A DNA stretch of 64,000 nucleotides from Dimorphilus gyrociliatus (Eukaryota > Animalia > Annelida), in NCBI GenBank assembly GCA_904063045.1, contig CAJFCJ010000014.1, positions 372,001 to 436,000 of the forward strand. The letters run 5' to 3'. Of this stretch, positions 3,778 through 56,500 are shown piece by piece (the stretch's first letter is position 1; each line of letters starts with the position of its first letter). The notes beneath the pieces were generated by a model that worked only from the letters and a program-made list of their open reading frames with translations, searched no databases and was not told the DNA's origin. The position numbers and the translations under genes are program-made.

Positions 3778-5036
3778 ATGGAAATAATCAATTCGTTTAC
3801 CGATGGCTATGTTGCTGTTATCTTTTCTATGATTATATCTTTAAGTAGTGGTAAGGTAGACATTCTTAGCATTCTATTTCCTTTATAATTCACAACGAAA
3901 GTATGCTCTCATAATACAGCTACAGAAGTTGGATGGAATCCTCTTGAAATTGTACTCGTAGAAGGTGGACAGCAAAAAACTGCTGCGTTTGGTGTACTTT
4001 CAGGTAGATGGCCAAGTGTTCAGAGGATATCTTGTACCTTTGAAGATGATCTTCCGAGTCAATTGACGACAAAGACACAATTCAATATTCCTGGTAGTCC
4101 CAATTTTGGAATTAAAAGCCATCCTTTCATTTTAACATTGGCGGGAAGGGTCGTAAGAGTGAAATTTCAAGCTGGAAATGATAACGCATGCGAGAATAAG
4201 GTCTATAGTTTAAAGGTACAATGTAAACAACAGGAGATTACGATCAATTTTCCAACAATAAAAGTAATAGTTACGAACACAAAGGACAGTAGCATGTGCA
4301 ATGATCCTCACCTTAACCAAAAAGTGAAAGGAATTGACGAAGATGGTAGAAACGTAACGAGAAATATTTGTTATGATGTCTACGGGACGGAGGGCGATCA
4401 GATGGAATTAATTAGCGATGCTATTCTAGGTTTGTCTCTGTACGTATAGATATTTCTTGTTTAAACGATTCATCATTTCCCAAAGGTACATCTATCGTTG
4501 TTGAACTTCGAGACGACTACTTCATCGGTAAAGTGTTTTTTTCTTCTAAGTTGGGATTGCTCAACGTTACTACGACGGCAATTTCCAATCGAGGACAGAA
4601 AATTACCCATTGGGGAAAGGAAGACTTATATGTAATCGGCGAGATAACCACACACGTTCAAGCAGTCCTTAAACTGTCGCTGGATAATCTTATAATTGAA
4701 TACAACGACGGGAAGAGATGTCAATCAATTAGAATTGTTAGAATTCAACAGACATTCGGAAAGAGCTATCTAAATGTGCTTATCGAAAAATCAACTAATA
4801 AAGATGGCGTATTTGACAAGCATCACGGTGGTATTTTTGGTTCAATTGCCAATCAACAGTACCAATTCTGTTACCCTGTTCAAGGAGAAGAAAACGTCAC
4901 TGTAGTTAAAATTAATGGAAGATTTGTTAAAGCTTTTCTAAAGGATAAACCTGATCAAGATCATCAATGTTATTTAATTAGTATTCAAGATCTACTCTTC
5001 CCTAAACATGTTTCTTCGTTTCAAAAGTCATTATAA
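3778..5036 (+). CDS. Array member P1: signal peptide + variable domain + CNDPH + ITI-HC-C-like domain
   Basis: Exon1 MEIINSFTDGYVAVIFSMIISLSS (donor gtaag 3851); exon2 contains ORF 4063-4449; intron 4430-4485; exon3 GTSIVVELRDDYFIGK...FQKSL stop. Confidence 0.88.
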
Positions 5037-5342: not shown

Positions 5343-6219
5343 TTAATAATGCTTTTGAAAATATTTCAAATTCTTTGGATATAAGATCTTGTTTAAATCT
5401 ACTTTATAAAAGTTCTCTCTATCATTGGAGACTCCTTCTCTCGTCGACAATGATTTCATATATCTACCATTCACTTTTAAAACTTTATTTTCACCGAGTA
5501 TTTCGTAGTTTCGTTTTGAAATCACTCCGAATAGACCGCCGTGAAATTTATCAATTATACCTTCATTTAACGATGAATTTCCTATACGAAATGTCAGGCA
5601 ATCTTGGTGAATTTTCAATACTGTTACATTAAGATGTCGTCTATCACTTTTTAGGTTGAAGAAGGACTGTTCCTCTGTTGATTTTACATCCACTCTAAAC
5701 TGTCTATTACTCATGTCAAACTTGTATGAATTTATCCAAAGGAGCTTTTTATCAAAAGGAACATCTATACCAGATGTTGTTACATTTATAAAGCCAATTG
5801 GAGTTTTAAAATAGATTTTATGGATACAAGAATCATCTCTAAGCTTGAAAACAATTGAAGAGTCTGTGTTAAAAAAAAGAAAAGATAAAATGAGAAATGA
5901 GGGAAAGATAAATGAATAATAAAGACAATAATTCAATATCTTACTTAAAATATAATCAGATATTATTTCAAATCCATGTTTTGGTTTTCCTTTCAAATCA
6001 TACGAGACATTAATGCTGACTTTATTAAAATTCTGATCAAATCCATTAACAATTTGCTTCAAGCCAATATCTATATATATATATATATATATATACAGTA
6101 TATAAACAGCAAAAATAGTAAAAATTAACAAGTATAAACTGTAAAGAATCCCTCTTACTATAGCATTTCATCAGATTTATAAGTATAAAGATGAAAATGA
6201 TATGTAAAAAATGAGCCAT
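5343..6219 (-). CDS. Array member P2: signal peptide spliced directly to the ITI-HC-C-like domain (no variable domain, no DPH)
   Basis: Exon1 6219-6159 MAHFLHIIFIFILINLMKCY with gtaag donor. Acceptor (ta)n-ag at 6071; exon2 NIGLKQIVNG...ISDYIL; 81-nt intron 5944-5864; exon3 SSIVFKLRDD...HGGLFG...FQKHY. Confidence 0.78.
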
Positions 6220-9931: not shown

Positions 9932-11215
9932 TTAGAGCATTTTATCTAAACGATTCAAAGGTTTTGAAAACTTTTCAAGTAGATTAGGACTTATAATTTG
10001 ATTTAACAAAAGCGTATAACATGTTTCATTATGATCAAAAGTATTCTTTAAATATGATTTAACAACAACTCCATTCACTTTAACAAGAGTCACTCTTCTA
10101 TTTTTTTGAATTGGTTTAAAAAATTCATAATCTTGATTTGAAACAATTTGGAATATACCGTTATGATGTGTATCGAATACGTTCATTTCACCTGTCGATT
10201 CGTCAATCATAACGTTCAAATAGCTTTCGCCATTCTGTCTGGTCACTCTATTTACTTTTATCACTTGAATTCTGTCGGCTTCATAATAGCTAAATATTGC
10301 AGTTGATCCATACAAGTTGACTGATAAATTTGGTCCAGAATCTTCGTCACCATTAAAATAATTACCCTGACCATTCCAAAATAATTGCGTGTGTTTGCCT
10401 ATAGCTATGCTAATAGTTGATATGATAATATTTTCCAATGGAGTGTTAAAGAATATCTTCCCAACATAATAATCTCGCTGAAATTCGAATATAGACGCAA
10501 GATCTGGAAAAAAGAATTCAGCTATAGTTATTTCGTATTCCCTAATTAGTAATAATAATAATGAAGAGATAGCTAGAAAAATATTCACTTAGAACATTAT
10601 CCGAAATTAGCTCATACTGACTACCAGCTTTTCCAAAAGTATCATAACAGATTAGCTCCTTGACCAGTACACCTTCTTCGTTGACGCCTAAAACCTTTTG
10701 AGAGAAATAGGGAGCTTCGCAATGTCTAGCTGGTGTTGAATTTATTACGTATAAATCCAAATAAGCATTTTTAACATCTATCACTCTTCCCGTTTCCTCA
10801 CTTTCAAAGCATCTCGCTTCTATACGATACTTTTTATCGGAACATGATGAATCGTCGTTTAAGCCAAAAAGTTCTAAATTCTCTATTGGCCATGTTTTTT
10901 TCAAATAGAAACTATCACTGGGAATAACTAAATCAACTGATCCAGGTGACTTGAGCTGACATTCAATAGGATTTATATAAGGCCAACTGTCTAAGCTAGA
11001 GATAATACCAAAGTCCAACATAATCTCTTCACCTTCGATGATAGTAGCATTCGTTTTAAACCATCCTATCGCTACTTCTGCTGTTTGACGCTTCAAAGTT
11101 ATATTTTTTCAATAAGCTACAAGAAAAAACACTTACGTTCTAAATCATAATCATAATAGCTTTCGCACGGTATGGAAAGGTAGAGAAAACATAGTATATA
11201 AAGAATAAAGCCCAT
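9932..11215 (-). CDS. Array member P5 (DPH replaced by CEAPY)
   Basis: Exon1 MGFILYILCFLYLSIPCESYYDYDLE at 11215; ORFs 10542-11096 and 9932-10588. Confidence 0.85.
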
Positions 11216-13167: not shown

Positions 13168-14423
13168 ATGAAATATTTCCCTCTTATTTATTGTATCTTT
13201 TGTCTATGGTCATCGACTTTCGGACAGAGTGATATAGGTAACATTTTATATTCATATATTAAAAACAAAAGAGCATAATCAAATAAATATAAATAAACAA
13301 TACTATGTTCCTTTTAAAGAATTGGGATTTTTCCAATATTCGCCTATTGAATTGGAGGAAGGGCAAAAATGCAAAGCAGAGTTTAGCCTTAAAGGTATCT
13401 GGCCTTCGAAATACGAAAATGATGTTTTCGTTTGTAAAATTATGAAAAGTTCGAAATTGGCGCCTATTTTGGTTACTCCTTTATCATTTGAAATCCATAA
13501 AAGTTCTCCCAAACAGATAATAGTCATAACAGTTAAGGAAGACAACGATTGCAGGGATGACAGACCTTACGTTGGTGTTGAAGTTCGCTGTACGAAGAAT
13601 TCTGAAGAATTAACTATTTCTAAATATAATGGTGTCTATTTTAGTGTTATAGACAACACAGTTGGTGAAATATGTAATAAACATCGTATTCAGCAGTTTG
13701 TCAAAGGCTATAACGAAAATGGCGAAGAAGTTCATGAAAAGATATGCTATGATATTTACGGTGAACACGGCGATGTCTTTGAGTTTGTAACCGACTCTTT
13801 ATTAGGTAAATTAAAATTGAATTAATTCTAGAAAGTAACAAATCATCTAAATAAAGGAAAAAAATACAAAACAAATCTATTCAGGTGTTTCAGCCTACTT
13901 TGAAATACGCGAAGAATATCATGTTGGCCGAATATTTATCATTACTCGTCAAGGTTCAATTGAAATAAACAGAGACTTTATTACTGGACCAGAAAATTTC
14001 CATCAGACTTGGGGTCAAGTTAAAAGAATTGAAGTTGGAACCGACTTTAAACTTGTAATTGATCTAAATAAGAAACTTTTGATTAAGGTAGAAGATGAGG
14101 GTAGAGTTCTGGCACTCGTAATTATTAAAGAAGAGAAATCGTTTGAGAAAAGTCACCTTAATATTGCTGTAGAAGAAACCACACCAAATCAAAAGATCCT
14201 CGACGAATTTCAAGGTGGCCTCTTGGGTTCGGCAGCAAATAACGTTTATCATTTCAATAAATCGGTTCAAAGAGGAAGAGAATCGGTAACGAAAGTAAAA
14301 ATCAATCAAAGGCCAGTCGCGTCTAAACTACAGCTAATCAATGATAACGAAGAATGCCACTTGATAAATATAGAAGATATTATCTTTCCTATGCCTGTAT
14401 CTCTCTTCCTACGGTCCGATTAA
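13168..14423 (+). CDS. Array member P7 (DPH replaced by CNKHR)
   Basis: Exon1 MKYFPLIYCIFCLWSSTFGQSDI at 13168; ORF 13322-13825; exon3 from about 13885 to the stop at 14423. Confidence 0.85.
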
Positions 14424-15502
14424 CAGGAAGGATTGACAGAGGAAAAAATGATGTGGTAACTACCGTTACAAGGAATCTGGCTTATCGTTGAACAAAGCAG
14501 CAAAAGCAAACCGAACCTTTGTATAAAGATTACGTAATTTTTGTGGGGGTGATATATGTTTTTTCTCTTTCTTTTCTTCTTCAATAAAATCATATCAACA
14601 AACTCTTTCGATGTAAATAGTTTATATATAGAACTGATATACTCGGTACAAATTTAAAGATTTCGTGTAAATACTTTGAACATGTACCAAGAATGATGAC
14701 TAATCTAAAGTTATATGCCCTCCTTTTACACTTTTGCGTACACTATCTATGTAAATTGTTTATTGAAAGATTAGGATTAAGGGAAAGATTCTTGTTGTTG
14801 TCACAAATATGAAAATCTAAAGGAAGGGAGAAAGGGTTAATTATAAAATTTATCAAAAGTTATTATAAAACTCTAAGTCTATTTCATTTTATTGCAATGT
14901 ATTCGTTGAATTTTAAGAGAGTGTATGCTTTTATTGCTAGCTTCCTTCCTATCCGAATGATTCACTCTATTAAAATGACGTTTGAACTAAGAGGGAAAGA
15001 GAGTAGAGAGGATCTATTCAAAATGAAAAATCTTTCCATCCTCCCTCATAGTATTTCTTATTTATTAGTAACACTTAATAACAAGTAATAAATTGCCGTT
15101 ACAAACAATAATTATGATTTTTACATTCGGTTAAAGCAATGTTACACTTTAAGACCTAGTTTTGAACATTTTTTTTTAAACAAAAAATCACAGTTATTTT
15201 TTTTCATGTTTTTTATGTTGACACCCGACAGTTTTGAATATTTGTGAGTAGTGCAAAATAAGGCGCTTATCCTTTAACAATAGGGGTTCTTAACTTCATT
15301 ATAATTAGATGCAAAAGTCAATATTTAATAATATATCATCTTTGATTACTTTGCCTTACAAGATTTATTATTTATAACTTAACAATCATTTCTAATAATA
15401 AATATACTGAATGATAAAATATCGACAATCACCATACGAAATACCTATGCTATAGATCAACTTTTGACCAAAAATAAATCGCAAACTGCCAATTTTCCAA
15501 CA

Positions 15503-15545: not shown

Positions 15546-15576
15546 CACAAAGAGGTAGCCGTTCAATTTAGAGAAA

Positions 15577-16848
15577 ATGAATTCATTTATTGTTGGCTTC
15601 TTTGCTTTTGTTATGTGCAGTGGGTTTGCTTTAGCGCAGAGTAAGTTTACATTAATTTCATTTTGGTTTTATTATCTTATAATTATTATAATTCTTAGAT
15701 CCATTGGAGTTGTCGTTTGGCTGGACACCAACGCAAGTTCAACTTAAAGAAGGTGGTCCATCAAAAGCAGTTTATCTTGGATTCCAAAATGGTGCTATTT
15801 GGCCAAAATTTTCTACAATTGTATGTTACCCGGAAACAGATGCCCACGATACTATTGAAATGAAAGCTGGTTTGTTGAGCCCATGGAAAAAACTGATCGA
15901 CGTTACAGGAATTGAAATAAACAAGCCTTTGAAATTTAAGAAATTGCTTTTTCGAGCTCGAGAGGACAAAATGTGCCAAAATAAACAATACTTTGTAGAA
16001 CTGGCCTGTTATGACAGAGAAAGTCCCGTAAAAGAAAATCCTTTACTTATAAAGTATACTACTCTAGAAATCAATGTACAAAATACCGAGCAAGGTAGTA
16101 TGTGTTCAGATCCTCACTTAACTCAAAAAGTATCTGGATTTAGTGAAGATGGCGAAAGTGTAACAAAAGATGTTTGCTATGATCTCTATGGAAAATCTGG
16201 TGATCAGATGGAATTGATTAGTGATAATGTCTTAGGTAAATAATTCATTGATTCTATCAATATCCTATTTATTAATTGTAATTGTTTCATTTAGGAACTT
16301 CGATCGTTTTTGAACTTCGAGATGATTATTATATCGGCAAAGTTTTCTATGCTACAAAATTGGGATATTTCAACTTTACTACCGACACTATTTCTACATC
16401 AAAATCTTCAAGTTTCAAATGGAAGAAAGAAGATAGTTTTGTCATTGGCGAAAAGGAGAAATATCCTCACGCAATTATCTCCAAAAATGAAATGGATGTT
16501 CTTATTGAATACTATGATAAAGATAGATCTCAATCCATTAGGATTGCTAAAATCCAACAATCATCATTTGGTAAAAGCTATTTAAATATTATGATTGAAA
16601 AGTCAACAAGTTTCAAAGGCGTGTTTGACGAACATCACGGTGGAATTTTTGGTTTAATTGCTAATCAAGATTATGAATTCTACGAGCCAATTCAAGAGAC
16701 GATCGATTTGACTGTTGTTAAAATAAATGGAAGATATGTGAAGGCATTCCTAACCGGCAAGCCTGGTGATACTGATAGATGTTATTCAATGAGTTTGGGA
16801 GATTTAATGTTTCCAAAGAATGTATATTCGTTCCAAAAGTCGTTGTAA
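15577..16848 (+). CDS. Array member P8 (CSDPH)
   Basis: Exon1 MNSFIVGFFAFVMCSGFALAQ; ORFs 15704-16243 and 16282-16848. Confidence 0.9.
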
Positions 16849-16971
16849 GAGAAATGCTATTTAGCATAAATGTTTTTGTTTAATTATAAATGTCTGAAAG
16901 ACCGTTTTTGTTAGAAATGATATTTCCTTTTTTTTGACAACGGTGTTCGACTATTATTTTTTGATAATAAA
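16145..16971 (+). repeat. About 825-bp near-identical direct repeat, copy 1 (copy 2 at 18479-19303)
   Basis: Read-along comparison: end of exon2, intron 2 (1 difference), exon3 (5 aa substitutions plus a one-codon indel) and 3'UTR are shared between P8 and P9. Confidence 0.92.
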
Positions 16972-17915
16972 CGTTAAAAACAGTTATATGTTAAACCCAG
17001 TTGTTTCATTAATTATTTGAAAATGATGTTCATAAAGGACAGACGGAGCAAAGTAGGCTACTGTCAAAGTTGACCTTCTTAGGTGTCTTTTCTTTTTTGA
17101 AAAATGTAGGCTTTCTATCGTTTACATATACAAGTTTCACAGTATATAAAGCTAAATAGACAACACTAATAAGATGATTTCTACATAGTCTTTTATTTTT
17201 AAATAAATAATAATTAGAGTAATACACGAACGTCTTTATTAATCCACTGATTATGTTCACAGTCAACGAAACTGATGGATTATATAGGAAGTGTTAACAT
17301 ATCGTCCATTTCCAAGTGAAGTGAACACTCGGCATTCCAGGTGTGATTTTGTGCATATTATTTTTGATTTATTATTAATAAATGATAAGAAATAATGAGC
17401 TATCATTTCAGAATATCGTATCAATTATTATTTAAATTGACGTACAAAAAAGAAACTACTTTCCGTCGGAAGTAACGCTACATTTGAACAAGTTGCGCCG
17501 TTCCTATTGTATTTTTAATATAGGACTAAAAAGCTTCAGTTTTTTATTTTGAAACAAGGTTTTTTATGTTCGTAGGGGACAGTTTTCAAAAATACTGAGT
17601 CCTGTAAGTCAAAGAGCGCTCCTTTAATAATAGGGGTTTCTACTTCTGGTATCATTCCATCAAAGTTAATCAGTCAATACTTGCCAGAATAGACCAGCAT
17701 ACTTATCGGCAACTTGGGTCGACAAAAAAATCTATATATTTCGCTGTCTTTGTGATGTAATTAACCAATTAAAAATATCAAATACCTATGCTGTAGAGTG
17801 ACCCATTCAAAAAAATACACAGCAAACTATCAACCGGTTGACATATAAATAGGATAGAAATTGGCTTTGAACACATCAGTTTTTCACTGAGAGGTAGCCG
17901 TTCAATTTAGAGAAT

Positions 17916-19179
17916 ATGAATTCATTTATTGTTGGCTTCTCTGCTCTCGTGCTATGCATTGCTTCTTCTTCAGCTCAACGTAAGTATATATTCATATCTT
18001 ATCTGTTCTATTATATTTTACTAACAACTTTTATTATACCACCGCAGACTCTTTTGGTTGGAATCCCAACTTAATTATATTAAAAGAAGCGGGACCCGCC
18101 GTCAAAGTTGAATTAGGTTTGATTGCTAATTCTTGGCCAGGAGGTGTCTTTGTAAAGTGCAAAGCAGTTGCGCCGAAAGCAAAAAAATTTATTCACACCA
18201 GAGCCCCAAATACCGCTCTCAAATGGAAGCCTGTACCAGAAAATAGTGTACATGTGATACCATTTCTCAATAAAAAGATATCTATATTCTTTAAAGCTGT
18301 AAAAGATGGAAAATGTCATGATCACACTTACAAGATAAAGTTGACATGTTGGAAGTTTGTCTTGAAGAATATTCCAATAAAAATAACAAATAGCGTGCTC
18401 ACCATTAAAGTAAAAAACACTGAAACAGGTAGTATGTGCGATGATCCTCATCTTACTCAAAAAGTATCTGGAATTGATGAAGATGGCGAAAGTGTAACAA
18501 AAGATGTTTGCTATGATCTCTATGGAAAATCTGGTGATCAGATGGAATTGATTAGTGATAATGTCTTAGGTAAATAATTTATTGATTCTATCAATATCCT
18601 ATTTATTAATTGTAATTGTTTCATTTAGGAACTTCGATCGTTTTTGAACTTCGAGATGATTATTATATCGGCAAAGTTTTCTATGCTACAAAATTGGGAT
18701 ATTTCAACTTTACTACCGACACTATTTCTACATCAAAATCTTCAAGTTTCAAATGGAAGAAAGAAGATAGTTTTGTCATTGGCGAAAAGGAGAAATATCC
18801 TCACGCAATTATCTCCAAAAATGAAATGGATGTTCTTATTGAATACTATGGTAAAGATAGATCTCAGTCCATTAGGATTGCTAAAATCCAACAATCATTT
18901 GGTAAAAGCTATTTGAACATTCTGATTGAAAAGTCAACAAGTTTCAAAGGCGTGTTTGACGAACATCACGGTGGAATTTTTGGTTTAATTGCTAATCAAG
19001 ATTATGAATTCTACGAACCAGTTCAAGAGACGATCGATTTGACTGTTGTTAAAATAAATGGAAGATTTGTGAAGGCATTCCTAACCGGCAAGCCTGGTGA
19101 TACTGATAGATGTTATTCAATGAGTTTGGGAGATTTAATGTTTCCAAAGAATGCGTATTCATTCCAAAAGTCGTTGTAA
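17916..19179 (+). CDS. Array member P9 (CDDPH)
   Basis: Exon1 MNSFIVGFSALVLCIASSSAQ; ORFs 18119-18577 and 18616-19179. Confidence 0.9.
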
Positions 19180-19303
19180 GAGAAATGCTATTTAGCATAA
19201 ATGTTTTTGTTCAATTATAAATGTCTGAAAGACCGTTTTTGTTAGAAATGATATTTCCTTTTTTTTTGACAACGGTGTTCGACTATTATTTTTTGATAAT
19301 AAA
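18479..19303 (+). repeat. About 825-bp near-identical direct repeat, copy 2
   Basis: Matches 16145-16971. Confidence 0.92.
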
Positions 19304-19536
19304 TTAAGAATAATTAATAAAAAAGTTGTATAATTCTTTCGTTTAGTTCAAACTAAACATAATGATTGACACGCGTCAAGAATATCGAAGAAGGGAAAAT
19401 GTACAATGATGTTTATCCTACTTCAAAAGTAAATGGTAGCGATAAATAAGGTAAAAACTGTATTGTATTATCATGTTACTTGAAAATCTGATGATTGGAT
19501 GGAATTGACTTTTGATAGTGTCTTAGCGATCTGATT

Positions 19537-19850
19537 GAAAAAGAAGATAGTTTTGTCAATAGGGAAAAGAAGAATAATTGGAAAACCTGGTGATACTGAT
19601 GAATGTTATTTGAGGGCGTCTCACCTCATTATCCCTACATATTTCAAATAATTTGAATGAGTAACCTGTATTTGTACAATAACTGCTATCAACAGACTCT
19701 GTCTAAGCAATAGAAGAAACGTTACTAGTTAATGGAAAATTTCTTAAAGCTTTTCTAAAGGATCAACCTGATCAAGATCGTCAATGTTATTCAATCAGTA
19801 TTCAAGATCTTCTCTTCTCTAAACATGCTTATTCGTTTCAAAAGTTATTA
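19537..19850 (+). pseudogene. Relic fragments of array exon 3
   Basis: 19537-19557 matches P8/P9 KKEDSFV; 19580-19610 matches GKPGDTDxCY; 19728-19850 translates VNGKFLKAFLKDQPDQDRQCYSISIQDLLFSKHAYSFQKLL, closest to the P1 C-terminus. Confidence 0.75.
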
Positions 19851-22576: not shown

Positions 22577-24400
22577 TCAAGAATATTTCAAAACTATGTA
22601 AAAAATGTCGAAAATCATTTTTTGGCAACTGAAAATAGCAGAGAAGAAATTATTGATAAATTCAGTAAAAATGATAGAAAGAAAATAGTATATTACGTAT
22701 CTAAAATCAGTATCAATAAGCGATTTTAATAACAGATCGTAGGCATCCCCTTCCGGAAATGAATCAATTATTTCCAAATATTTTGAAGCTAATTGAATTT
22801 TTTTCATACACTGTATATAAAAAAGAAAAGAAGGTTAAAGATACTCTTTGTTCTTCTGCTTATGAATATTAATTAACTTAATTACAAAATGTATGTAATG
22901 AAATCTGGATAGAAGAATACTAGAAAGTTCGAATGAAACATGATAGAAGATCGAATTTCTTATACCAAGTTTATAAATCTCTTCAAAAATTTTACAACCA
23001 ATTTCGACTATTTTCATCCAATTATCCTCATTATTTGATACGATTTTGATACAATTAACTAATCTAAAGCACCATCTAACGGCTAGCAAATCGCCAAGAT
23101 TGTAACCACATTTCGTTATTGAATATTTATAAATATCTAAAATTTCCAGCAAAACCTTTTGGAATAGAAAAAGGAAAGAAACAATCTAAAATTAGTATCT
23201 CTGTTATCCAGTGTTCAAGTCTATTAACCTTCCAAAGTCTGTTAAGATTAATGGTCGTCCCGGAACAAAGGATTCTAACTAGAATAGTACTGTAATAGTT
23301 TATCTGAACCGGGGAGCATTTCAGATAGTCTAGAGCATTGACAATGATATTAGCATCAACATTTGCCTCCGACTAAATAGAAAAGAGAAGGTATAGAAGT
23401 ATTAATAGATTATTTATACTTACCAATCCCTGTTGAAAAAATAGAATATCTGAAGAAGTTGAAAGATACAAACAATATACGCCTACAGACTGGCAATCTA
23501 TTTCAAAGAATTCAAGGTTGCGATGATTCGCTATAAATTTCCTGGAAAGTAAGACAATAACTTTGATAAGTACAAATGAAATATGAATAATAATCATAAC
23601 TAATAATAGCATTCTTACTTGACTATATCTTGTGATATTGTAAAATGAAGATACACTCGGAAGAATTTTAACAATGTCCAAACGTTCGAGTTGATAAAGT
23701 TCTCTTCAATATATTCAAGACTTTTAGCCGTAATAAAGCCAATATTTAAATATTCAATACATTGAAGATGATATAGATAGTACAATTGTTGAAAATTAAT
23801 AACAACTTCATTAGAAATTCTATAATTAAACGATTTTAAACTGTGTAGATGTTCAATTGGAGATAATAATTGAACACTTGTCTTTGTTATATCCAAGTAT
23901 TCTAACGAAATTAATTCAATACATATGAAATTGAAGCAATTATCATCAAATTTCGTAAAGCTTACGTCCAATTTAATTAAATTCCTAAAATTTTTCAAAT
24001 GATTTATCGAACTAATTGGTTCTTTGTTACTAAGAAGACAATCTATTATAGATAATTCTCTTAAATTCTCATTATTAATATATTCAACCCAATCTGATAG
24101 ATAGAAATTATTTAAGTTTTGAATATGAATACATTCCAATGGATGATTCTTTAGAAAAGCCAAAAATGATTTATTTACTATTCTCCTTCCATTAAATTTT
24201 ACTCTTCTTAGTTTAGTTCTTATCGAATCGAAATATTCTAAACAATCCTCCTTAATGCCAAGGTTAAATTCGTCTAAATAAGTAAATATCCTCTCAGCCA
24301 AGTGACACGGAAGCCTCTTACCCTTATTCACATCAACATTTAGGATTATATAACTATTTTTAGCGATAAATCTTACACATAATTGCTTCAAGGTAAACAT
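22577..24400 (-). CDS. ZYG11/ZER1-like leucine-rich-repeat protein (putative Cullin-2 substrate receptor)
   Basis: N-terminal BC-box-like MFTLKQLCVRFIAKN and LP..LAERIF, LRRs (NLIKLDVSFT, LEYLDITKT), then KFIANHRNLEFF and ARM-like exons. The 3' end is uncertain. Confidence 0.7.
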
Positions 24401-26948: not shown

Positions 26949-27669
26949 CTACTCCCTACAATTTCTCAAATGAGGGCAATTGGGAAAATGTTTCTTGTGC
27001 TCGTCAAGTGGTTTGTCCCCCAGACTCCACTTTCTTAAAATACCATTACAGAAGTAACATTGGACCCTATCAGCTAATCCTAAATAGAAAAATCCCACTC
27101 TTGCTAGTTCTTTTTCATCGATTACACTCTTGAGAGGCCAAGGATTTTTTGGATTTGTAAATGTATTTAGTCTATCCTTCTCTCTTGATAAATCCTCAGC
27201 ACTATTGTCGAATGTGTATGATGCGTTTAGATTTTTTTCGGCTGCTTTAGTCGGCATCTCTGGGCTGTCTTGCGCTGATTTTCCATAACGATTCGGTTTC
27301 GGACGTGCCTGCTGAACCGATTGTGACTGATTTCTAAGAGGATTACTGGAGGCAGCAGAGGGGACGTCAGAAAGTTCGTTATATTGAAATTCAAGCTTAT
27401 TTTCAGAATCATTAGACGATAATACAGCTTTTTCTTTTTTAGCACTCTGAGGAGAGTCCTTATAATATTCACAAGTAGTTTTATGTTTAAGATCTGTCAT
27501 GTCTTTTTCATAAAAACAGAAATGTTTTACTGCGCATTTATGACACGCAATACTATCATCGTCCCTGAAGTAATAATATCCATTATATGCCAATTGAGCG
27601 AAGGTACATTTACACATTTTACATTGTTTATAAGAAGAGAGTCGCTTAGTCGCCTTATCCATATTATAC

Positions 27670-27671
<2 letters not shown>
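26949..27671 (-). CDS. BIR-domain (IAP-family) protein, intronless, two BIRs, no RING
   Basis: BIR2 RLNTF..WP..ELARVGFFYLGLADRVQCYFCNGILRKWSLGDKPLDEHKKHFPNC; N-terminal BIR atypical (C-x2-C-x16-H-x3-C). Confidence 0.88.
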
Positions 27672-28877: not shown

Positions 28878-29555
28878 TTAAATATTATTTCGTTTATTAA
28901 GTGCATATGAACAGTGTGGAAAATGTTTTAAATGTTCAACTAATGGTTTATCTCCATAGCTCCATTTGCGGAGTATTCCATTGCAATGGAAACATTGTAC
29001 TCTGTCTCCAACTCCCAAATAATGGAATCCTGCCTCTGCAAGCTCTTTTGCTTCAATGACATTTTTAAGGGGCCAATCTTTAAAAGTTAAATATCTTTGA
29101 GAGACTTTTTGCAAATCGTCTTTTAAAAACGTTCTATCCAGATTATTATCAATGCACGAATCGCAACAATCCGAATCGTTTGATGAAATACTGTCATCTT
29201 CCAGTGAATTTTTTTGAAATTGTTCCCGATTTTCCTCGTTTGACGAAGAGAATGAAGATAATGAAAGTGAATTTGTACAGCCTGAGGAAGGAAAACTTGT
29301 AAGACTTAGAGTCATTTTTTCAGCTTTATTCTTTTCCAATTCACGTTGCATTGAACAACCCGATTTATGAATTAATGACTGCATATTTAAATTTTCAAAG
29401 TTTGTAATTATACAACCACACTCAAAACATCTTATAGATCTATCATCATATACGTAATAGAAGCCCAACATAGATAATTTAGACCAGCTTAGACTCCAAG
29501 ATGGAGCATCTTTATATGTTCGTAATCTTGCTGGAAGCTTTATGAAGGTCATCAT
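28878..29555 (-). CDS. Second BIR-domain (IAP-family) paralogue, intronless, two BIRs, no RING
   Basis: ATG at 29555 (MMTFIKLPARLRTY); BIR2 RYLTFKDWP..ELAEAGFHYLGVGDRVQCFHC...EHLKHFPHC; Ser-rich linker. Confidence 0.88.
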   Translation of the reverse strand: MMTFIKLPARLRTYKDAPSWSLSWSKLSMLGFYYVYDDRSIRCFECGCIITNFENLNMQSLIHKSGCSMQRELEKNKAEKMTLSLTSFPSSGCTNSLSLSSFSSSNEENREQFQKNSLEDDSISSNDSDCCDSCIDNNLDRTFLKDDLQKVSQRYLTFKDWPLKNVIEAKELAEAGFHYLGVGDRVQCFHCNGILRKWSYGDKPLVEHLKHFPHCSYALNKRNNI

Positions 29556-31152
29556 AAAGTTATTAATTCGAATTTTCCCAAAAACGAATACCACTACGTT
29601 GCCCTAATTAGATAAACAATACCCTTTAGGTGCAACTCTTCTTTACCAAGAATATATAAATATCTACGAAGACAAATCCAATAGAACAGTGTCGTGGACA
29701 TTATCTAACTAAAAGTTATATGTTATATATAATATATATATAAGCATAAAACCATAGGAATTCCAGTTTCGTCTCGACGGATTAATGTAAACAAATGCCA
29801 TATTCATCGTTTTTTTTATGTTACTTTTACTGTTTACTTCCTATTCTTCCTTTTTCTACAAAATGTTTACTTTTTGAATTCCATATCACCTCTCATATTG
29901 ATGGATTGAAGAGATAAAGACGTTGGACGACTATTTACCAAAACAACAAGTGCTTGTTATATCAGTTAAAGATACGTTTTTATTTTTAGACCTAGGATAA
30001 ATACATTATACTCACTTCAGACAAATAATCTATCAATTGAACCAATTTTATCATATTGTTTAGTTCGATCATGTAGAAATATAAGAATATCTGCCTTTGT
30101 AACTACTATAATAGTCGATAGATGTCTCCACTGTCGGGAGATGTCACCAACCCAACCGCTAGCAGGCGCATCTTGACGCAGCACCCGGCGTCAAAAACTG
30201 ACAGATCAATATACTAGCGTTTCTGGCGTTAACAAGGCGTCCCTCCCCCTATTCGCCGGTATTAAACCGTAAGTACTCTCTAATTTTAAAAGAACACCCT
30301 TAAAAAAAATATATCCTTATCGTACTCGTGCCTATTACGTAATGCCTGAGAGAGATAGAGAGAGGGAGAGACAGAAATCGATGCCGAGGAGAAAGAGAGA
30401 AGTGGCGAATTCTTAAAGGGCACCCGGTTAATCGGAAATACTAGGATTCCATTCCGCTCTTATTCTAGCGTCTTCTTTTTCGTACAACAGCTATTTTAAA
30501 GATAGATTTACTGCTATCAATAATGAGTTAACGTTTACCCTTTTAAAGCTTAGGGAGCAATAGAGCGATACCTAAGGTGCTTTTGAACCCCACCGGAAAT
30601 GAATGAACATGACAAGTTGATAGAAGAGCGTGTTTATTAATCAATTATTAACGGTGAGTAGCGTCGATTGTTCAAGAAAGTCATACTGATCAATAATCAT
30701 AGTACCAGTCTTTTATAGTATTATCACGAATACAGTTAAATAGCAGAAAAATTATGACGCCTACGTTTTCTTCTTTCATTCTACTTTTTCCTTACATCTT
30801 ATTTTTTCTCCGTCTTCTTATTCCTTTTCCTCTTTCCCTTTTTCCCGTCCCTTGTCCGCCGTCTTCTATCGTCTTCTTTCTTTATTGTATATTATGTATG
30901 TCTTTTATTATTTCTTAACTTTTATCTTATTTTCGCCAATTCCAGGTGATATTCGAATGAAGCGAACAAATCGAAAAAGTACGAGTTTTTAATTACAACG
31001 TTCCTTTGTCGTCTTTGACGAAAAACTGTAAAGAAGAGAGAAGAGAGGATAGGGAGGAAGAGAGATAGCTAAAGAAAAAGTTGGCATATCCTTGTCTCTC
31101 TTTCATTCTCTTTCTCTTTTTCCCCATTCTTCTAATTCGTTTTTTATATATT

Positions 31153-37535: not shown

Positions 37536-39707
37536 CTACTGCCTTCGTATTCTCTGTATATGCTCTTTTAGTTCAATATTCTCTTGTAGTAAACTTTCTG
37601 TGATAGGACTTGTGTTTCCACAGCCAGTTGCAGGACATCTGTATAAATCGAATAGTTAAATTATTAATTGTCTTCAGTGGGATAGGGAATAATCCTAAAA
37701 ATTTAGGCTAAGTATAAAAAAAAAATAAATTCATTACTTTGCGATATTAGGCTTTCTCTTCATATGCGCTTGGATAGCAAATTTTTCATAGTTATGTTGG
37801 CAAATCATATTCATAACCGGATCTTTCATGTTCAGCTGTGTAATAGGACACTTAATACCGATTTCCGTATCACACAATATCAAATCGTCATCTTCGTCTT
37901 CAACTTCCATTTGCTTAGAATCACTTTCATGCAATAAATTCAATATTCTGGCAGCCTGAGCGGAGCATATCTCACGAACAACGTTTTTATCACAATCTTT
38001 ATATTTTAAATTGACAAGTGCCTGAGTTTTCTTTTCTCTTAAAGGCTTCAAGCATATTAGAAAGTATTTATGACTTTCGTTATCCGTTACTTTTCCATAA
38101 TAAGGCTCCGAACCGAAAGTCATCTTTAATTTGTTCCTCAATGTATTCATGGCAATTGGTCCGAATTCAACGAATAAACAGCCCTTCTCGATATTAACTT
38201 TGATATGTACTATATCTTTTAAACTGCAGTCAAAGTTTATCTTCTTGTTTTCATGATAAAATATTAAATTAAGTGAGTGTCCTGATAGTTTACATTCGTC
38301 TTTTTCGTCAGATTTAATAACTAATGATCCTATATGAATTTCTTTCATGTCTAATCTACAAGCTTCAACGTGCCACTGGCACTTAGTAAAATTTGAGCCG
38401 TTCCACATTCCGATATATGAATCTCCGTTATCTCTAACCCTATAGATGCCATTTTTTGATAAATCGCTCACGATTCTCTGCCTTTCCATTGGATTATTTG
38501 GTAATACAATTTCTGGTTGCGAGGACACGAAACTCGTTGGTAGCTGCTGAGTAGCTGATGTTGACTAATAAAAAATTATAGTCAAATTAAGTTCAGGTGA
38601 AAATAAAATTTAACTCTTTTCCTGGAAATAACTTACAGCAGCAGCACAATCCTTCTGTTGGGTAACAGTGATATTCCTGGGAGTAGTTAACGTTACTGTA
38701 GCTACCTGAGGTTGTCGTGCACTAATTGCATTAATAGTCTGTATGTTGGTGGCCTGTTTATATAATAAAGAATTAATTCAAAATTACCATTTATATTGAA
38801 AATTAGCTGAGACTTTTTTTTTATTTTGCTCAAGATTTTACATGTATAATAACAAATTATAGTTTTTACCAATTGCAAGTTGGATGGACTACTGTTAAGC
38901 CAAGCAGTGAAGTTTCCTTCAGTTTGAAACAGCAAGTCCAAGACTTGGGTTGGTGATATTATTGTTAATAACTCTTCCTGACGCTTAAATTTGTTTTTCA
39001 TCAAGGCACATTTTGAAGCTATTTGATTCTTCATTGACTGAGTTATGTCATTAGGCGTCAAGATGAAAATTAGGCACCTTTGTAATTCTCCTAAAATTCA
39101 TAAAGAATATTTATTATTTAATGTAAAAAAGAGATAAAGAACATAATTATTCTATCAAAAAGAAGAAACGTGTTGTATACTTTCGTTATTATCTCCGAAC
39201 TCTTCATTACTGAGGTTAAAAATTTCTTTCAGTTGTCTGATTGATGAAGACTCTAAATGAACAAACATAGCCGGGAACGGATGTTGAAAGTTAATAGTTA
39301 TTCTTGTTATTGATTTTGTATTAATCAAAACCGGGGAAAATTCTCCTTCATCTTCATTAAAACATATTCGTTTAGAATTAATAAAATTTTACCTAAAATT
39401 AACTCTTACTTTTCACGTGGAACATAACGCCATCGTTTTGGAAAGTTACTTTGGAATTATGAGAAGTAGTTTCGAATTTCCTAAGTCCCATTCTTATTTC
39501 CATAACGACTAAAACAGGATCAGTTGATGGAGGTGGTCCTGCAGTTATTGGCTGTCTTGGAATAATAGTTGGAATAGTTTGTTGCGAAACGACCGAGCGG
39601 CCTGGCTGGCGTATTAATGTGTGAACAGGCACAGTCATTTGATTAGTGTTAGATATTGTATTTGGCGGCTTCATAAGGGCAATATTTTGTGCTGGATATC
39701 GCTGCAT
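37536..39707 (-). CDS. SP-RING (NSE2/MMS21-type) SUMO-ligase-like protein with two N-terminal SENP6/7-type PH-like domains
   Basis: C-terminus DDDLILCDTEIGIKCPITQLNMKDPVMNMICQHNYEKFAI...KCPATGCGN (last exon 37639-37536). Upstream repeats LVVMEIRMG.. and LDMKEIHIGSL...LRNKLKM...ESHKYFLICL. Confidence 0.7.
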
Positions 39708-44711: not shown

Positions 44712-47700
44712 CTATGAGTCATTTATTATAGATACTACATCTTTCAAATTATGAATTCCTCTATTAATGTTAGTCTGTAGTCGTTCATATTCTTTCCCCT
44801 TACCCATCATACCGTCCAATTCCGACAATACGCAATCTATTATATTATAAGGTATTGGGTCTTTGTAACCATTTGGATCAGTATTATACAAGAGACGAAC
44901 TGTCTCCAGCAAATCGTTACTTTGGCGAGCTGCTTCCAATAGTAAACCATGTTTATAATAGAGTCTAATCAAGTCTGCCTGATCTTTCTTTCTCATTTCG
45001 TCGATAAGCCAAGCTGGAATCGGTGCATTGGAGCTTAGAAATCTTGACAGAAGCACAGTTAAATGACAACTTCCGTCTCCTGAACCGTAAGATTCTAACA
45101 GCTCCCTCAAGACTTTAATCGCCTTATCATATGCTTGACAGTCTTCTTCAAGTCTTGATAATTGAACGATTTTTAATGCCAAACGTTCAAATACAATAGC
45201 CAAATTTAACTTGCACATTATTGATAATTTTGCGGCGCACGCAAATAAATCGTTGGAACATAATTCGTGTACTAATGCACTTTCTGTATCCGCTCTACAA
45301 GCAGCCTCGTAGTTAACCTTAGATAATTCTAAACGACTACACCCAATAACGTAGTCTCTTTCCAATTCAGGAGCGTTAACAACTTTCAATTGAGAATCAT
45401 TAGCTTTTAATATGTTTCCGTCTTTATCATATTTTACCTCAACAACAAGCTCAACTGGTTCAACAATGCAGAAATTTGTCTTTTCCAATTCCATATATTT
45501 GCTTGCAATTGAATATGTAGACGCCAAAGCGAAAGCATTTTGATTAACCCAACTTGGATCATCCGGTTTCTCTGCGCAGAGTCTTCTTGAATATTCATGC
45601 ATAATACCAGCTGCGCGAACGTCTTCTTTATATTTTAAATGAAGACAGTGCAGAACTTCGTACAAATTTAGTGGTTCAACTGGAACTGGTAGAGATCTGG
45701 CTCTCATTTCCAAGACTTTAACAAGTTCATCATAAACTTCACTAGACCAATTTAACTTAAGAATGATATTTAGCTTATTCGACGAGCTTAGTACGTGCGT
45801 AAACTGTACCAAACAGTTTCGTAATATATCTTCGTATCCTGCTAATTTTACAAGAGCATCACAGCAGTCCTTAAATTTTTTGGCTGAAAGACTAAGCGTA
45901 AATTTCATAGATAACAATTGACTATATATCGCAGCTCCTTGAGGGAATTTAGCAATGTTGTTCCGCTCCATCTGACCAATAGATTCGTCAAGAATAACTT
46001 CTAAAATTGGATCCCTGTCTAAGCAATAGATTATTTGCGCTGTTTTGTAAAGAAGAAGTGCTTTTGAGCTATAATTAGGATCAGTTTCATCAATAACATC
46101 ACTGGCGTCGATAATCTCGTCGGGGAAATTAGATATCTTATTAAGACATAAAAGCACGTCTTGAGGATGATAAGATAAGTAAGCCCTTGCTAAAGATTCT
46201 AGAAAGTATAAAATGTCAGATTGTTCCATTATACTTTTCGCAATATCCAAACGAGCAATCTTTCCGCAATCAGTCCAATCAATAACTGCTTCAAAACATC
46301 CAGAAGATATTAAACCTGCCGCGGTATTTACGCAAACCTCTAAATTAGGTAGAGAGGCTCGCTGAATGAACTGCGATAGACATTCAAATTGTATGGGTAG
46401 TGACTTAAATGTCTGCTTTACCAGCGAATAGTAATTTGTAACAAAGTTATCATCACCTAGGAGTATATCCAAAATTCCAATCTTTTCTTTCTCAATACAG
46501 CCTTTATAAGATGAACACCTTAAGAAAGGTAGATAATTGGTAATTTCGTTGACGACTGATCCATCTAATATCGTTCTCTCGTAGGTTCTGTGCAGCATAT
46601 TATGGAATGCGTTGAGTACAGCTAACAAACTGACTAATTCTTCAATAAACGAATCGTCAATACCAAAAAAACGTTCGCATAATATGGAAAGAATAGTGAT
46701 ATCAAGTACTAGAACCCTTTTCTTAGCAATTCCATATGTAATTTTGGAGCGTAGTACTTTCTTGGAAATTGTAGACAGACTACATTCAATTGGACCGGAC
46801 GGTGGATATCCCTCAGCATCTAGAGCAAATAGAGAATCTTGAAGAACACCTGCTATGTACGTAATAGCCTGTTTTTTAATCTGAAGATTTGACTTTAACG
46901 AATTTTCAAAATTAATTCTCTCTTCCATATCACTCCATCCACCGTCCATAATTCTATCTACAAATTTAGTTACTCCATTCTCCGGATTGGCCTTTATATC
47001 CATCCATAAACAATCTTGCATTTCGGGTGAAATTCTCTCTTCAATTAGGACAATTGCTGGTTGTAAACTTTGTAATAAATCATCGATATTCCTTTCATCT
47101 TTTTTCATATAAGTAGAAGGCTTTAGCCTTTTTGAATAGATGCAAAAGTACGAATCTGACGACGCAAATAGAAAAGAATTGCAATCGCTAACATTTAAAG
47201 AAGCTGGTCGTCTCATAGATATTTCACTACGAACGCAAGTTTGATAAATTTCATTCCAAATATAAAATTCAACCTGACGAACAGTCGATTCGGCATCGTC
47301 ACTTGATCGTCTACTTTCAATTTCATTTTTAGCAAGCATTTGTATAGCTTCTAATATTGTAATTCTACTGGGAAATTCATTTTTACCAACATGCATAGCG
47401 TTCGCCAAAGTTTTTACGTGGAAAAGTTCCTCATCCGCTAGCTTATTAAGGAAGACTTCTGAAATTTTCTCTTCAGAAGATATATTCACGCTAGATAACA
47501 ATTTTTGATATCCAATATCCGAATCAATTTCAGTCAATTTATAATCTTTAGTCCTTTCAATCGGCATTTCTAAAATCTGTAATGAAAAAGTAATGAATAA
47601 ATTAAACTAGCCGTGAATTTTTCTTGTATGCTTAGTAGTTTTAATAACGCTCTTTACCTGATGTCCGCTATCGTCTTGCAATAGAGTATAAATCATTCCA

Positions 47701-53526: not shown

Positions 53527-56500
53527 TCAGTCTTCCTTCTTCTTATTGCCAGCTTGGGCTTGTTGTAAATCGTAATAGAAACCTTGCTCATTCAAAAGTT
53601 GTTGATGACTTCCTTGCTCAACCACTCTACCTAAGTCTATTACTGCGATTGAATCTGAATTTTGTATCGTTGATAATCTATGGGCAATGACTATGCAAGT
53701 TCGACCCTTTTGGGCTTTTTCAAGAGCTTCTTGTACGACTTTTTCACTTTCGGCATCTAATGCGCTAGTAGCTTCGTCTAAGAGCTAAACAATAAAACAT
53801 ATATAAAATAATGAATGAAATTGAAATAAATCATTCATACTTACTAAAATAACTGGATCTCTGACTAGAGCACGGGCAATAGCAATTCTTTGCTTTTGAC
53901 CTCCTGATAGTTGAGTTCCCTTTGCTCCAACATTAGTATCATAACCCATCGGTAATGTTTGAATAAAATTATGAATATTAGCCGATTTAGCCGCTTCTAT
54001 AATATCAGTCATACTAAGTGTTTTTGAATTATCACCGTACGCTATGTTCTCGGCAATTGAACAGTCGAATAAAGTCGGCTCTTGGGTAACAATACCAATT
54101 TTGGAACGCAAATATGATGTATTATAATTGGAGATATCTTCCCCATCTAGTGTCTTTTTAAGAAAAATTTTACGCTTTGTACAAAGAGGAAGATAAATAA
54201 GATATATCAATTACTCACCACAATACCATTTCTGGGATTATAAAATCTCTCCAATAAAGATATTGTTGTTGATTTTCCGCAGCCAGAACTACCAACTAGA
54301 GCTAAGGTTTGACCTTTTTCAACAGATAAATTTAAACCTTGTAAAACGGGTACCTCCAATCTAGTTGGATATCTAAATTTAACATCTTGAAAAACAATGG
54401 AGCCTTTGACAGTAGTAGGCTTAACACCGTTAGTAGTTGTGGGATCAATTTCACTTTTTCTATCAAAAAGGGCAAAAAGTTTTGATGCTGATAATTTTGC
54501 TTTACCGTAATCTAATGAAAAAGCCGATGATCTTCCAACAGATTGAGCACCAATAGTCAAAGCTGAAAAAACACGGAAGACACTGGTATATTCTAAACCG
54601 TCGTCAACCAATTTTGAACCAAGACCGAAGGCAGCAGCGTAAGCGTAGAAAAGAACACTTTGGGCGAAAGCGTAAGTGAACGCGAAAACTAGACTCTTCT
54701 TTTTACCATTTCCATACTCTTCGTCCAAAAACTTTCCATATCTTTGTTCAAAGTAATCTTCTCTCGTTAATTGTACTACGGTTCTTATTTGGCTGATGGC
54801 TTCAGATGCAATAGCCTGAGCGCCTTCAACCGCCGTCCTTCCCCCACTATTGAACGACGAGACAATTTTACCTTGAACAATACCACTAAGCAAAAGCGGT
54901 GGTGTAAAGACAAGAATAAGTAGCGACAATTTCCAACTGAATACAAAACCAACAATAACCGCTGTACCAGCATTAGCAAGAGAGAAAAATACAGTAGATA
55001 ATTGAGATCCAACTGCACCTTTAACATTGGCGGCATCAATAGCTAAACGTGAAGTTAAAGCACCAACTTGATTCTTTTGATCATCAAAATAACCCATTTC
55101 CATTCTTAGCATAGACTTAAAAGCCATTTGACGTAGGCGCATAGTTAAATTTTCACCAGCAACACCAAACAAATACATTCTACCGGATACGAAAAGAAAG
55201 CCTGCAAAACCAAAACTTGCCATAATCACAGCGTAAAGATTCGCTCTTCTCTTCTGAACATCTTCTGGTTTTGAAAAATTTCCCAAAAATTCACTAAATA
55301 GTAAGCTAAACATCGGCATCATAACACCGTTTAGAAGAGCGCAAATAGATCCCATTACCAATTGAAACCATTCGGGGGAGTTTATTTTAACTATCCTTGA
55401 TAACGGAGCTTCGGGTAATTTTTGTTCTTCTTCCTTTTCTAATTCTTGTACGCTAACAGTTCTTTGAGAACGAAGTCTCCTCTTTGCCGAACTCCTTCTC
55501 ATACTAGTCAAACGTTTCGGGGCTAAGGGTATTTTCTCCTCAACAACATCAGTCACTTCCTCTTCTATAGTATGGAAAATTAAAAATGATTATATAATAA
55601 AGCGTGTACATTATATAAATATATATTTACCGTCATCGTCACTTCCTTCTCCTTCCATTTCTTGTATCTATAATTAGAAGATATTCATCAATTTAAGTCA
55701 TATATGTATATACATGCAAACACCCATCCAGATAGTATATAAGTAAGGTAAACGATAAGATAAGAGGGGAAGAAACAGGTAAGTGATTAGCATGCATATT
55801 TGTCTTAAGATATATATAAAATTCTTGATATACAATAAGGATTGACAAACTTATTCATGCAAATACCATAAGGTACAGTGAACTCACTTGAATATCTATT
55901 TTATCCGTATTTTGTATCTTATGACATAAATTAAACAATAAAATATATACGATTGGTTTCTTAGTAGAAGATAATTGAAATTTAATCGTTTATATAACAG
56001 ACATATATATATATATTTAGAATATTTACTTGTTGTTTAACAAGATCCGAGTACAGACCGCCTTTCTCCATAAGTTCATCGTGTGTACCTTGTTCAGCAA
56101 CTACGCCTTCAGAAATAGCAACTATAAGATCAGCATTGCGGACAGTTGACAATCTGTGAGCTATAACCAAAGTCGTACGACCCTTAGAAGCTTTATCCAA
56201 AGCTTTTTGGACAATAGCTTCGCTTTGCGTATCTAAGGCGGATGTTGCCTCATCCAAAAACTAGAGAATACAATTTTAAGTGATAAACAGATTAATAATC
56301 AGATTTTTTTTATTTTTAGCTTACCAATATCTTTGGGTTAGACACCAAAGCTCTGGCTAGAGCGATTCTTTGTTTTTGACCGCCAGAAAGTTGAGCACCT
56401 CTCTCACCCACCATTGTGTTATATGAATCAGGCAGTCGAGAAATGAAATCGTGAGCGTTGGCATTTTTCGCAGCTTCGATAACTTGCGCTTCCGTAGCTC

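Follow-up and report, generated by a model that had tools for sequence, protein, structure and literature searches.

Tail-confined gene conversion as the probable source of a mosaic gene pair in the annelid Dimorphilus gyrociliatus

In the annelid Dimorphilus gyrociliatus, two tandem genes for secreted proteins, P8 (DgyrCDS9728 in the public annotation) and P9 (DgyrCDS9729), carry nearly identical tails behind strongly diverged fronts. Both belong to a cluster of ten paralogues between positions 3778 and 21405 of a 64,000-bp stretch (assembly GCA_904063045.1, contig CAJFCJ010000014.1, positions 372001-436000), which is called the window here and whose coordinates are used throughout; the assembly comprises 77.9 Mb in 349 contigs. 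The plan of the proteins in this cluster consists of a signal peptide, a Calx-beta-like Ig domain (the front, or N-domain), the motif x-Asp-Pro-His (DPH), and an ITIH-C/VWD-like domain (the tail). The findings described below are best explained if P8 and P9 are old tandem sister duplicates in which conversion has been confined to the tail, a reading given a probability of about 0.8.

The exon models built for P8 (15577-15640, 15699-16235 and 16295-16848; 384 amino acids) and P9 (17916-17979, 18048-18569 and 18629-19179; 378 amino acids) are identical to the annotated proteins, and the two genes are direct copies 2.3 kb apart. A comparison of the sequence with itself by BLAST gives a single long repeat, 16070-16986 against 18404-19316, with 95.6% identity. 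Within it, the homogenised tract (16144-16971 in P8, 18478-19303 in P9) extends to a shared AATAAA and contains 15 difference events in 828 bp: one in intron 2, five amino acid substitutions, one 3-nt in-frame indel, five synonymous changes in identical residues, a second change in a replaced codon, and two changes in the 3' untranslated region (UTR). Intron 2 is retained in the tract and is identical at 58 of 59 positions; the 3' UTR is identical at 122 of 124. A first-pass annotation of this DNA had reported near-identical back halves of about 825 bp with one intron difference, five substitutions and one indel, and these counts agree with the tract; however, the roughly 187 amino acids that it assigned to them correspond to exon 3 alone, whereas the tract spans about 214 codons. 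Derived changes within the tract fall on both copies and are mostly silent or conservative.

The N-domains of P8 and P9 are 32.8% identical in amino acids over 128 codons, with a proportion of silent differences (pS) of 0.68 and a silent divergence (dS) of about 1.8, whereas from the DPH motif onward the identity is 96.9% and dS is 0.06. Silent divergence thus falls more than 20-fold within the 828-bp tract, and dS is far from uniform along the gene; a uniform dS was the outcome that the first-pass annotation had set against its own proposal. When silent changes are counted in identical residues only, which avoids alignment bias, 24 of 48 codons differ silently before the tract and 5 of 203 inside it (p=1e-15). 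The paralogue g1 (DgyrCDS9722) serves as a control and has no such step relative to either gene (17/38 versus 60/126, p=0.85; 20/40 versus 58/125, p=0.72). A change-point model raises the log likelihood by 151 and places the maximum-likelihood breakpoint at 16121, with an interval of 16121-16147, or 12-38 nt past the first base of the Asp codon (16109-16111). The breakpoint therefore adjoins the domain border, as had been claimed, but it does not lie at the DPH motif itself. No repeat and no recombination signal was seen at the aligned junction.

Upstream of the tract the two genes are diverged yet homologous. In intron 1, 38 of 58 columns match (p=0.02 against shuffles), and in the promoter block 114 of 164 columns do (score 58 versus 26+-3), whereas the upstream region of g1 matches neither gene. 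Consequently, the front halves, which had been described as unrelated-looking, are strongly diverged as reported but are related, and the homologous promoter block indicates that P8 and P9 are old sister duplicates. Past AATAAA the sequences are unrelated. Given the silent-site step and the flat g1 controls, the earlier proposal that gene conversion, or an equivalent homologous exchange, homogenised the C-terminal module is upheld, and on this sequence evidence it is very probable that interlocus gene conversion made the P8/P9 tract.

The tract is not uniform in age. There is one difference in the first 373 bp and there are 14 in the remaining 454 columns (Fisher p=0.003 for a boundary set post hoc; permutation p=0.02). 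Two rounds of conversion are therefore probable, an older one reaching out to AATAAA and a younger one over 16144-16516. In addition, a block at the start codon (15553-15602 versus 17892-17941) is identical at 48 of 50 bases, a match with p of about 0.001 after scanning, so that the near identity noted earlier for the 5' UTR and the start of the signal peptide is real. This block may be a short conversion tract, perhaps from a third event, or it may reflect strong constraint. It is proposed that the tracts end near DPH because similarity collapses there, that the Ig domain evolves about three times faster than the tail, and that copies losing their own Ig domain were probably selected against. 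The tail would be exchangeable because it is a generic processing module.

A similar pattern is present in a second pair from the same clade, two transcripts (L042 and L048) found in one marine metatranscriptome. Their N-domains are about 50% identical; identity is 95-100% from 27 nt before the Asp codon (interval -30 to -25) to about +215, then 67-80%, and about 90% at the end, and silent changes number 21/40 versus 6/78 (p=1e-7). Breakpoints thus fall near DPH from either side, and this is most simply explained by a rise in similarity at that point between any pair of members, which is visible in the comparisons with g1. Relative to g1, the replacement divergence (dN) of P8 and P9 is 0.8-0.9 in the Ig domain and 0.3 in the tail. 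Another pair of transcripts, L041 and L046, is identical over 930 nt and then differs at about 17 sites in a 130-nt patch. These two sequences, which come from two samples, share a one-base frameshift soon after DPH (near L041 575-585), either a real null allele or a common assembly error. At L048 1077-1200, the last codons and the stop are tandemly repeated (an 82-nt insert), and a second, diverged copy of the C-terminus lies in the 3' UTR.

Selection on the fronts has been assessed in two pairs of recent whole-gene duplicates, or unmerged haplotypes, elsewhere in the genome (L021/L022 and L014/L018). In the Ig part, the ratio of replacement to silent differences (pN/pS) is 2.3 and 1.4, respectively, with the replacement changes clustered in two Ig domains. 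For the pooled pairs, pN is 0.081 and pS 0.043 in the Ig part (p=0.026), and pN in the tail is 0.010. The Ig part thus has about eight times the replacement rate of the tail (p=2e-16), while pS is not significantly different. From these sequence comparisons, diversifying selection appears to act on Ig parts elsewhere in the family. An excess of replacements in the Ig domain together with overwritten tails fits the balance between conversion and selection described for protocadherins and RHD/RHCE (PMC3966226).

Other explanations of the mosaic have been considered. A single unequal crossover or short segmental duplication, placing the 3' half of one gene behind the 5' half of the other, would yield the same mosaic. 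A decayed extra copy at 19400-19850, sharp-edged partial copies elsewhere (L025, L027 and L030), and a weak grouping of the P8 and g1 N-domains are all compatible with such an event. It is nevertheless improbable, because the unrelated sequence past AATAAA means that two exchanges would be required, which amounts to a conversion-like double event. Furthermore, the two zones of different age and the separate 50-bp block suggest repeated events, and the promoter and intron 1 of P8 resemble those of P9, not g1.

It is also quite improbable that the mosaic is an artefact of assembly or polishing, with tails homogenised or duplicated during PacBio self-correction or consensus building, or with two haplotypes placed in tandem. 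The assembly was made with PBcR, Quiver, Pilon and HaploMerger2 (PMC7854359), the P8 and P9 proteins are on record from this one contig only, and the 373-bp zone exceeds the 298-bp Illumina insert, so that this zone alone could have been flattened by read correction. However, the 14 differences of the 3' zone leave both frames open and look biological, the heterozygosity of the strain, 0.16% (PMC7854359 supplement), is far below the 3% difference in the tract and the 40% in the front, the flanks are not shared as they would be in a false tandem, and the same pattern is found in the independent transcript data of L042 and L048. Allelic haplotypes in tandem are rejected on the heterozygosity and the unshared flanks. 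Conversion templated by mRNA is likewise rejected, since intron 2 is retained although the tract ends at AATAAA.

The first-pass annotation had gone further and suggested that variable cassettes are exchanged, as in a variable/constant immune or effector system. In such a system, recombination directed at the DPH junction would swap Ig cassettes before a constant tail. Breakpoints within 40 nt of the Asp codon in two independent pairs, diversifying selection on Ig parts elsewhere in the family, and the flanking of the variable part by the 5' block and the 3' tract are all in its favor. Yet a profile of the N-domain from which P8 and P9 were excluded hits the genome 13 times, always within a complete gene, and the N-domains of P8 (N8, E 6e-11) and P9 (N9, E 5e-14) account for one hit each; no second copy, donor or orphan cassette of either is present in the assembly by this search, and single-sequence genome searches with g1 and with an outgroup transcript agree. 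There is also no shared constant region at the genomic level, as exon 3 and the poly(A) signal are present separately in each gene, which is a complete transcription unit. The breakpoints are not fixed, lying at +12 to +38, -27, about +110 and -415 nt relative to Asp in four pairs, the last two being those of other partial copies. The promoter and most of exon 1 are old and diverged, which is not expected of a recent duplicate with a swapped middle. Thus, neither the exchange of cassettes nor an immune or effector type of locus is supported, and a cassette system is considered very improbable.

N8, N9 and the N-domain of g1 are mutual best matches, as are the corresponding C-halves. In the tree of the C part, P8 and P9 are joined at 100/99 with branches of 0.02 and 0.009, respectively. 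Trees of the N-domain are mostly unresolved and lean toward P8+g1 (81/92 and 76/82, unstarred), and P8 and P9 as sisters are not rejected (approximately unbiased test, p=0.36). The resolved part of the N tree, three transcripts from other samples (97/99), is congruent with the C tree. Since the N clades are congruent where resolved and the N-domains are single-copy, the fronts appear to have stayed with their loci while the tails were overwritten.

It is scarcely credible that the genes duplicated recently and that only the Ig domain then came under very strong diversifying selection: although selection on Ig parts does occur in other pairs, divergence here is at or near saturation at silent sites, in intron 1 and in the promoter while intron 2 and the 3' UTR are 98% identical, so that the silent-site step refutes it and the earlier argument that selection alone is insufficient is sound.

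Two further candidates for exchange have been dismissed. L025/L030 is not a second cassette swap, as L025 is a 5'-truncated copy beside a Mutator-type transposase with its break in an intron, and P0094/P0151 is not a shared-tail pair, as the fronts are identical. L025, L027 and L030 are sharply bounded partial copies of a single gene of the family; they are 99% identical and occur on three small contigs. The MULE transposase stands beside L025, and in P0086 the model of such a transposase is fused with a domain of the family; the spread of these genes may be aided by Mutator elements.

The nature of the two modules has been approached through structure. Exon-by-exon searches of Pfam and PDB sequences with the P8 and P9 exons gave no match, and the domains are recognised by structure alone. 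An AlphaFold2 model of g1, the closest paralogue, made from a 38-row alignment (predicted local distance difference test score 84.8), comprises two domains with DPH at their junction. The first, residues 26-146, matches Calx CBD1 (Z 10.7, root-mean-square deviation (rmsd) 2.6, 105 aligned) and the Calx-beta domain of integrin beta4 (Z 9.8), while residues 154-377 match VWD domains with Z 11.4-11.9, namely those of MUC5B (Z 11.9, rmsd 3.6, 149 aligned), FCGBP (Z 11.6) and VWF. In a structure atlas, rows 1-4 for g1 are ITIH or ITI_HC_C, with a template modeling (TM) score of 0.74 by target, 188 residues aligned and rmsd 2.8-4.0, a comparison of predicted with predicted structures. No Pfam match to Calx-beta (PF03160) was obtained; there is no acidic Ca2+ site, and the domains of P8, P9 and g1 are basic. 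VIT and vWA domains likewise have no Pfam match, and the g1 model consists of one Ig and one VWD-like domain. The isoelectric point (pI) of the Ig domains of P8, P9 and g1 (15699-16108, 18048-18442 and 3920-4300) is 8.3-10.0, whereas most other Ig domains in the cluster and in relatives from other samples are acidic (pI 4.1-6.4).

GDPH is the majority form in the family, with 59 of the collected proteins having it, and in this cluster the motif is C-x-DPH. The Cys two residues before Asp, Cys(-2), co-occurs with an extra Ig-domain Cys in 13 of 13 related sequences that have it, compared with 7 of 45; g3 has neither. The tail of P8 and P9 has two Cys only. Cys(-2) most likely pairs within the front fragment, in which case there would probably be no evident disulfide tethering the cut halves. 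ITIH also lacks such a tether; this is the situation of ITIH and the sponge wreath domain, and differs from that of mucins (PMC11670116). Cleavage at such motifs is autocatalytic and yields an Asp anhydride, which in ITIH3 is coupled to chondroitin sulfate (PMC8267560, PMC10880436). By analogy with ITIH propeptides, the Asp-Pro bond would be broken by the tail during passage through the secretory pathway, and cleavage of this kind is somewhat probable in these proteins. The cut would free the Ig domain, about 14 kDa in size, with a reactive Asp at its C-terminal end that is then hydrolysed or joined to a glycan or amine; covalent coupling, argued from the same analogy, is doubtful. The Ig domains themselves might be modules that have diversified to bind mucus, matrix or microbial surfaces. 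The same tail also stands behind different cargo (P0116, P0092, P0081, P0110 and L028), with lectin-like or LCCL-like fronts of up to 1880 amino acids, and this variety of cargo shows that the tail is a portable module.

Several findings weigh against this picture. The front dS of 1.5-2 is saturated and cannot order the splits, and the weak P8+g1 grouping may mean that N8 has a separate history. L042 and L048, like L041 and L046, are de novo transcript contigs, in which chimerism is possible, though the tract carries differences. The dN/dS of the P8/P9 N-domain is below 1 (0.78/1.8), the replacement excess being found in the other pairs only, and in one of those two pairs the tail pN is also above pS (8 versus 1 changes). 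Matches to Pfam ITI_HC_C fall below the cut-off (E 0.012-0.049, 13.7-15.7 bits versus 27) and come from other family members, with none for the P8 and P9 exons. The motif in P8 and P9 is SDPH or DDPH, not GDPH, and two intact genes of the cluster, g5 (9932-11215, minus strand) and g7 (13168-14423, plus strand), have Asp-Pro replaced (EAPY and NKHR), and to judge from their sequences are presumably not cleavable. Finally, the anhydride of FCGBP is simply hydrolysed (PMC8267560). Asp-Pro has been lost in a similar way in a relative that belongs to another species (L043 69-1199).

Parallels to the mosaic exist among clustered protocadherin ectodomains, RHD/RHCE and the two-locus model of Innan (PMC3966226), in which one domain of tandem paralogues is homogenised and the recognition part remains divergent; in such domain-restricted systems the tree of the converted part also has short branches, like those of P8 and P9. 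Unlike these cases, P8 and P9 each have their own tail, with no shared constant exon reached by splicing, and the breakpoint lies inside an exon, at the predicted self-cleavage site. Antigen-receptor loci and polymorphic toxins are alike at the protein level in their variable front and constant back, but here no recombination signals, cassette reservoir, shared constant exon or immunity gene are seen.

Among proteins, ITIH is similar in that DPH starts a VWD-like C-terminal domain without an evident tethering disulfide, in the TM score given above, and in C-x-D/N-x(2)-G after the motif. In contrast, P8 and P9 lack VIT and vWA domains, the cargo is one Calx-beta-like Ig domain, the Pfam score is below cut-off, and cleavage and chondroitin coupling are only predicted. 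The sponge aggregation factor (AF) proteins MAFp3/p4 and the Amphimedon AF cluster (PMC11670116, PMC5400394) are also secreted and tandemly clustered, with fast-evolving Calx-beta domains before a VWD-like (wreath) domain and an Asp-Pro site without tethering Cys. However, AF proteins are giant, multi-repeat and acidic, whereas P8 and P9 have about 380 amino acids and one basic Ig domain; the resemblance is one of architecture only. The VWD proteins cleaved at GDPH, such as FCGBP, MUC2, MUC5AC and RGM (PMC10880436, PMC8267560), share a VWD fold that starts at the DPH hairpin (Z 9-12), but in these the upstream strand is disulfide-linked and C8/TIL/E domains follow, neither of which is apparent in P8 and P9 from sequence.

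The features of the two genes and of related loci are collected in Table 1.

Table 1. Positions of the P8 and P9 features, the adjacent relic and the control gene in the window
Feature	Position	Strand	Remarks
P8 upstream (promoter) block	15180-15330	+	homologous to 17525-17679, about 70% identical
P8 5' block, 24 nt of 5' UTR and first 9 codons	15553-15602	+	48/50 identical to P9 17892-17941
P8 (DgyrCDS9728) exon 1, signal peptide	15577-15640	+	
P8 intron 1, 58 nt	15641-15698	+	diverged from P9 intron 1
P8 variable Calx-beta-like Ig domain, 5' part of exon 2	15699-16108	+	pI 8.3; fold from paralogue g1
P8 Asp159-Pro-His, predicted autocatalytic Asp-Pro site, start of VWD-like domain	16109-16117	+	
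5' breakpoint support interval of homogenised tract	16121-16147	+	
P8 probable younger sub-tract	16144-16516	+	1 difference in 373 bp; end of exon 2, intron 2 (16236-16294), start of exon 3
P8 probable older sub-tract	16517-16971	+	14 events in 454 columns; rest of exon 3 (stop ends at 16848), 3' UTR to AATAAA
P9 upstream block	17525-17679	+	homologous to 15180-15330
P9 5' block	17892-17941	+	48/50 identical to P8
P9 (DgyrCDS9729) exon 1, signal peptide	17916-17979	+	
P9 intron 1, 68 nt	17980-18047	+	
P9 variable Calx-beta-like Ig domain, strongly basic	18048-18442	+	pI 10.0; 22 K+R versus 7 D+E
P9 Asp154-Pro-His, predicted cleavage site	18443-18451	+	
P9 homogenised tract	18478-19303	+	end of exon 2 (to 18569), intron 2 (18570-18628), exon 3 (18629-19179), 3' UTR to AATAAA
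Decayed relic of a further clade member	19400-19850	+	last 122 bp (19729-19850) 91% identical to 3' end of g1
g1 (DgyrCDS9722), third clade member	3778-5036	+	silent-site control; protein used for structure model

The relic just 3' of P9 is heavily deleted; g1 lies 15 kb away, and the tails of P8 and P9 are about 68% identical to that of g1. It suggests either a lost duplicate of g1 or a further exchange. In g2 (5343-6219, minus strand), the whole Ig domain and the DPH motif are apparently missing, so that the signal peptide joins the tail almost directly, and many conserved residues of the tail are changed. A tail profile gives 153 matches in the D. gyrociliatus genome, and among 1.84 billion proteins it matches no more than 249 clusters (50% identity); the clusters that were traced come from D. 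gyrociliatus or marine samples. A genomic contig of another animal (L043, from SRR23372228) has three tandem members with intron 2 in the same position, which indicates that the layout of the cluster predates D. gyrociliatus. No publication about the family in Dimorphilus emerged from literature searches, nor any that contains the string DPHFII.

Elsewhere in the window, 561-2593 is part of an inverted duplication of about 2 kb (96-99% identical to L001 9400-10000 and L002 1-1431), whose other copy lies about 10 kb upstream of the window start and which covers part of a gene with an SRCR domain. Two adjacent IAP genes with BIR domains are found at 26949-27671 and 28878-29594 (minus strand), along with a Zer-1-like leucine-rich repeat gene (23615-24400), an Nse2-type zinc finger (37734-38528) and Nup160 (44712-47567). 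Open reading frames at 54207-57594 resemble an ABCB transporter, by their look alone.

The process that made the mosaic is itself known, being textbook concerted evolution, while the family is undescribed. It would be wrong to take the mosaic for a rearranging immune locus; what gives it value is the indirect evidence that it offers about a family of secreted proteins. In the genome the protein behaves as two modules divided at the predicted Asp-Pro site, with the tail overwritten by that of a neighbour in two lineages and the Ig front kept and diversifying, as would be expected if the tail is a generic processing unit. One practical consequence is that trees and dating based on the tail will misplace P8 and P9. 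A bolder idea, which must be regarded as a long shot, is that the ITIH-like self-cleaving tail of this dinophilid family is a portable coupling device and that recurrent conversion keeps the tails interchangeable, occasionally re-pairing them with positively selected Ig fronts. If so, the family would supply from the germline a repertoire of binders that become attached covalently to mucus, matrix or microbes, and thus an aggregation-factor-like form of recognition in a bilaterian. P8 and P9, with their near-identical tails and different cargo, offer a natural experiment and are the most suitable pair for tests of cleavage, coupling and binding specificity.

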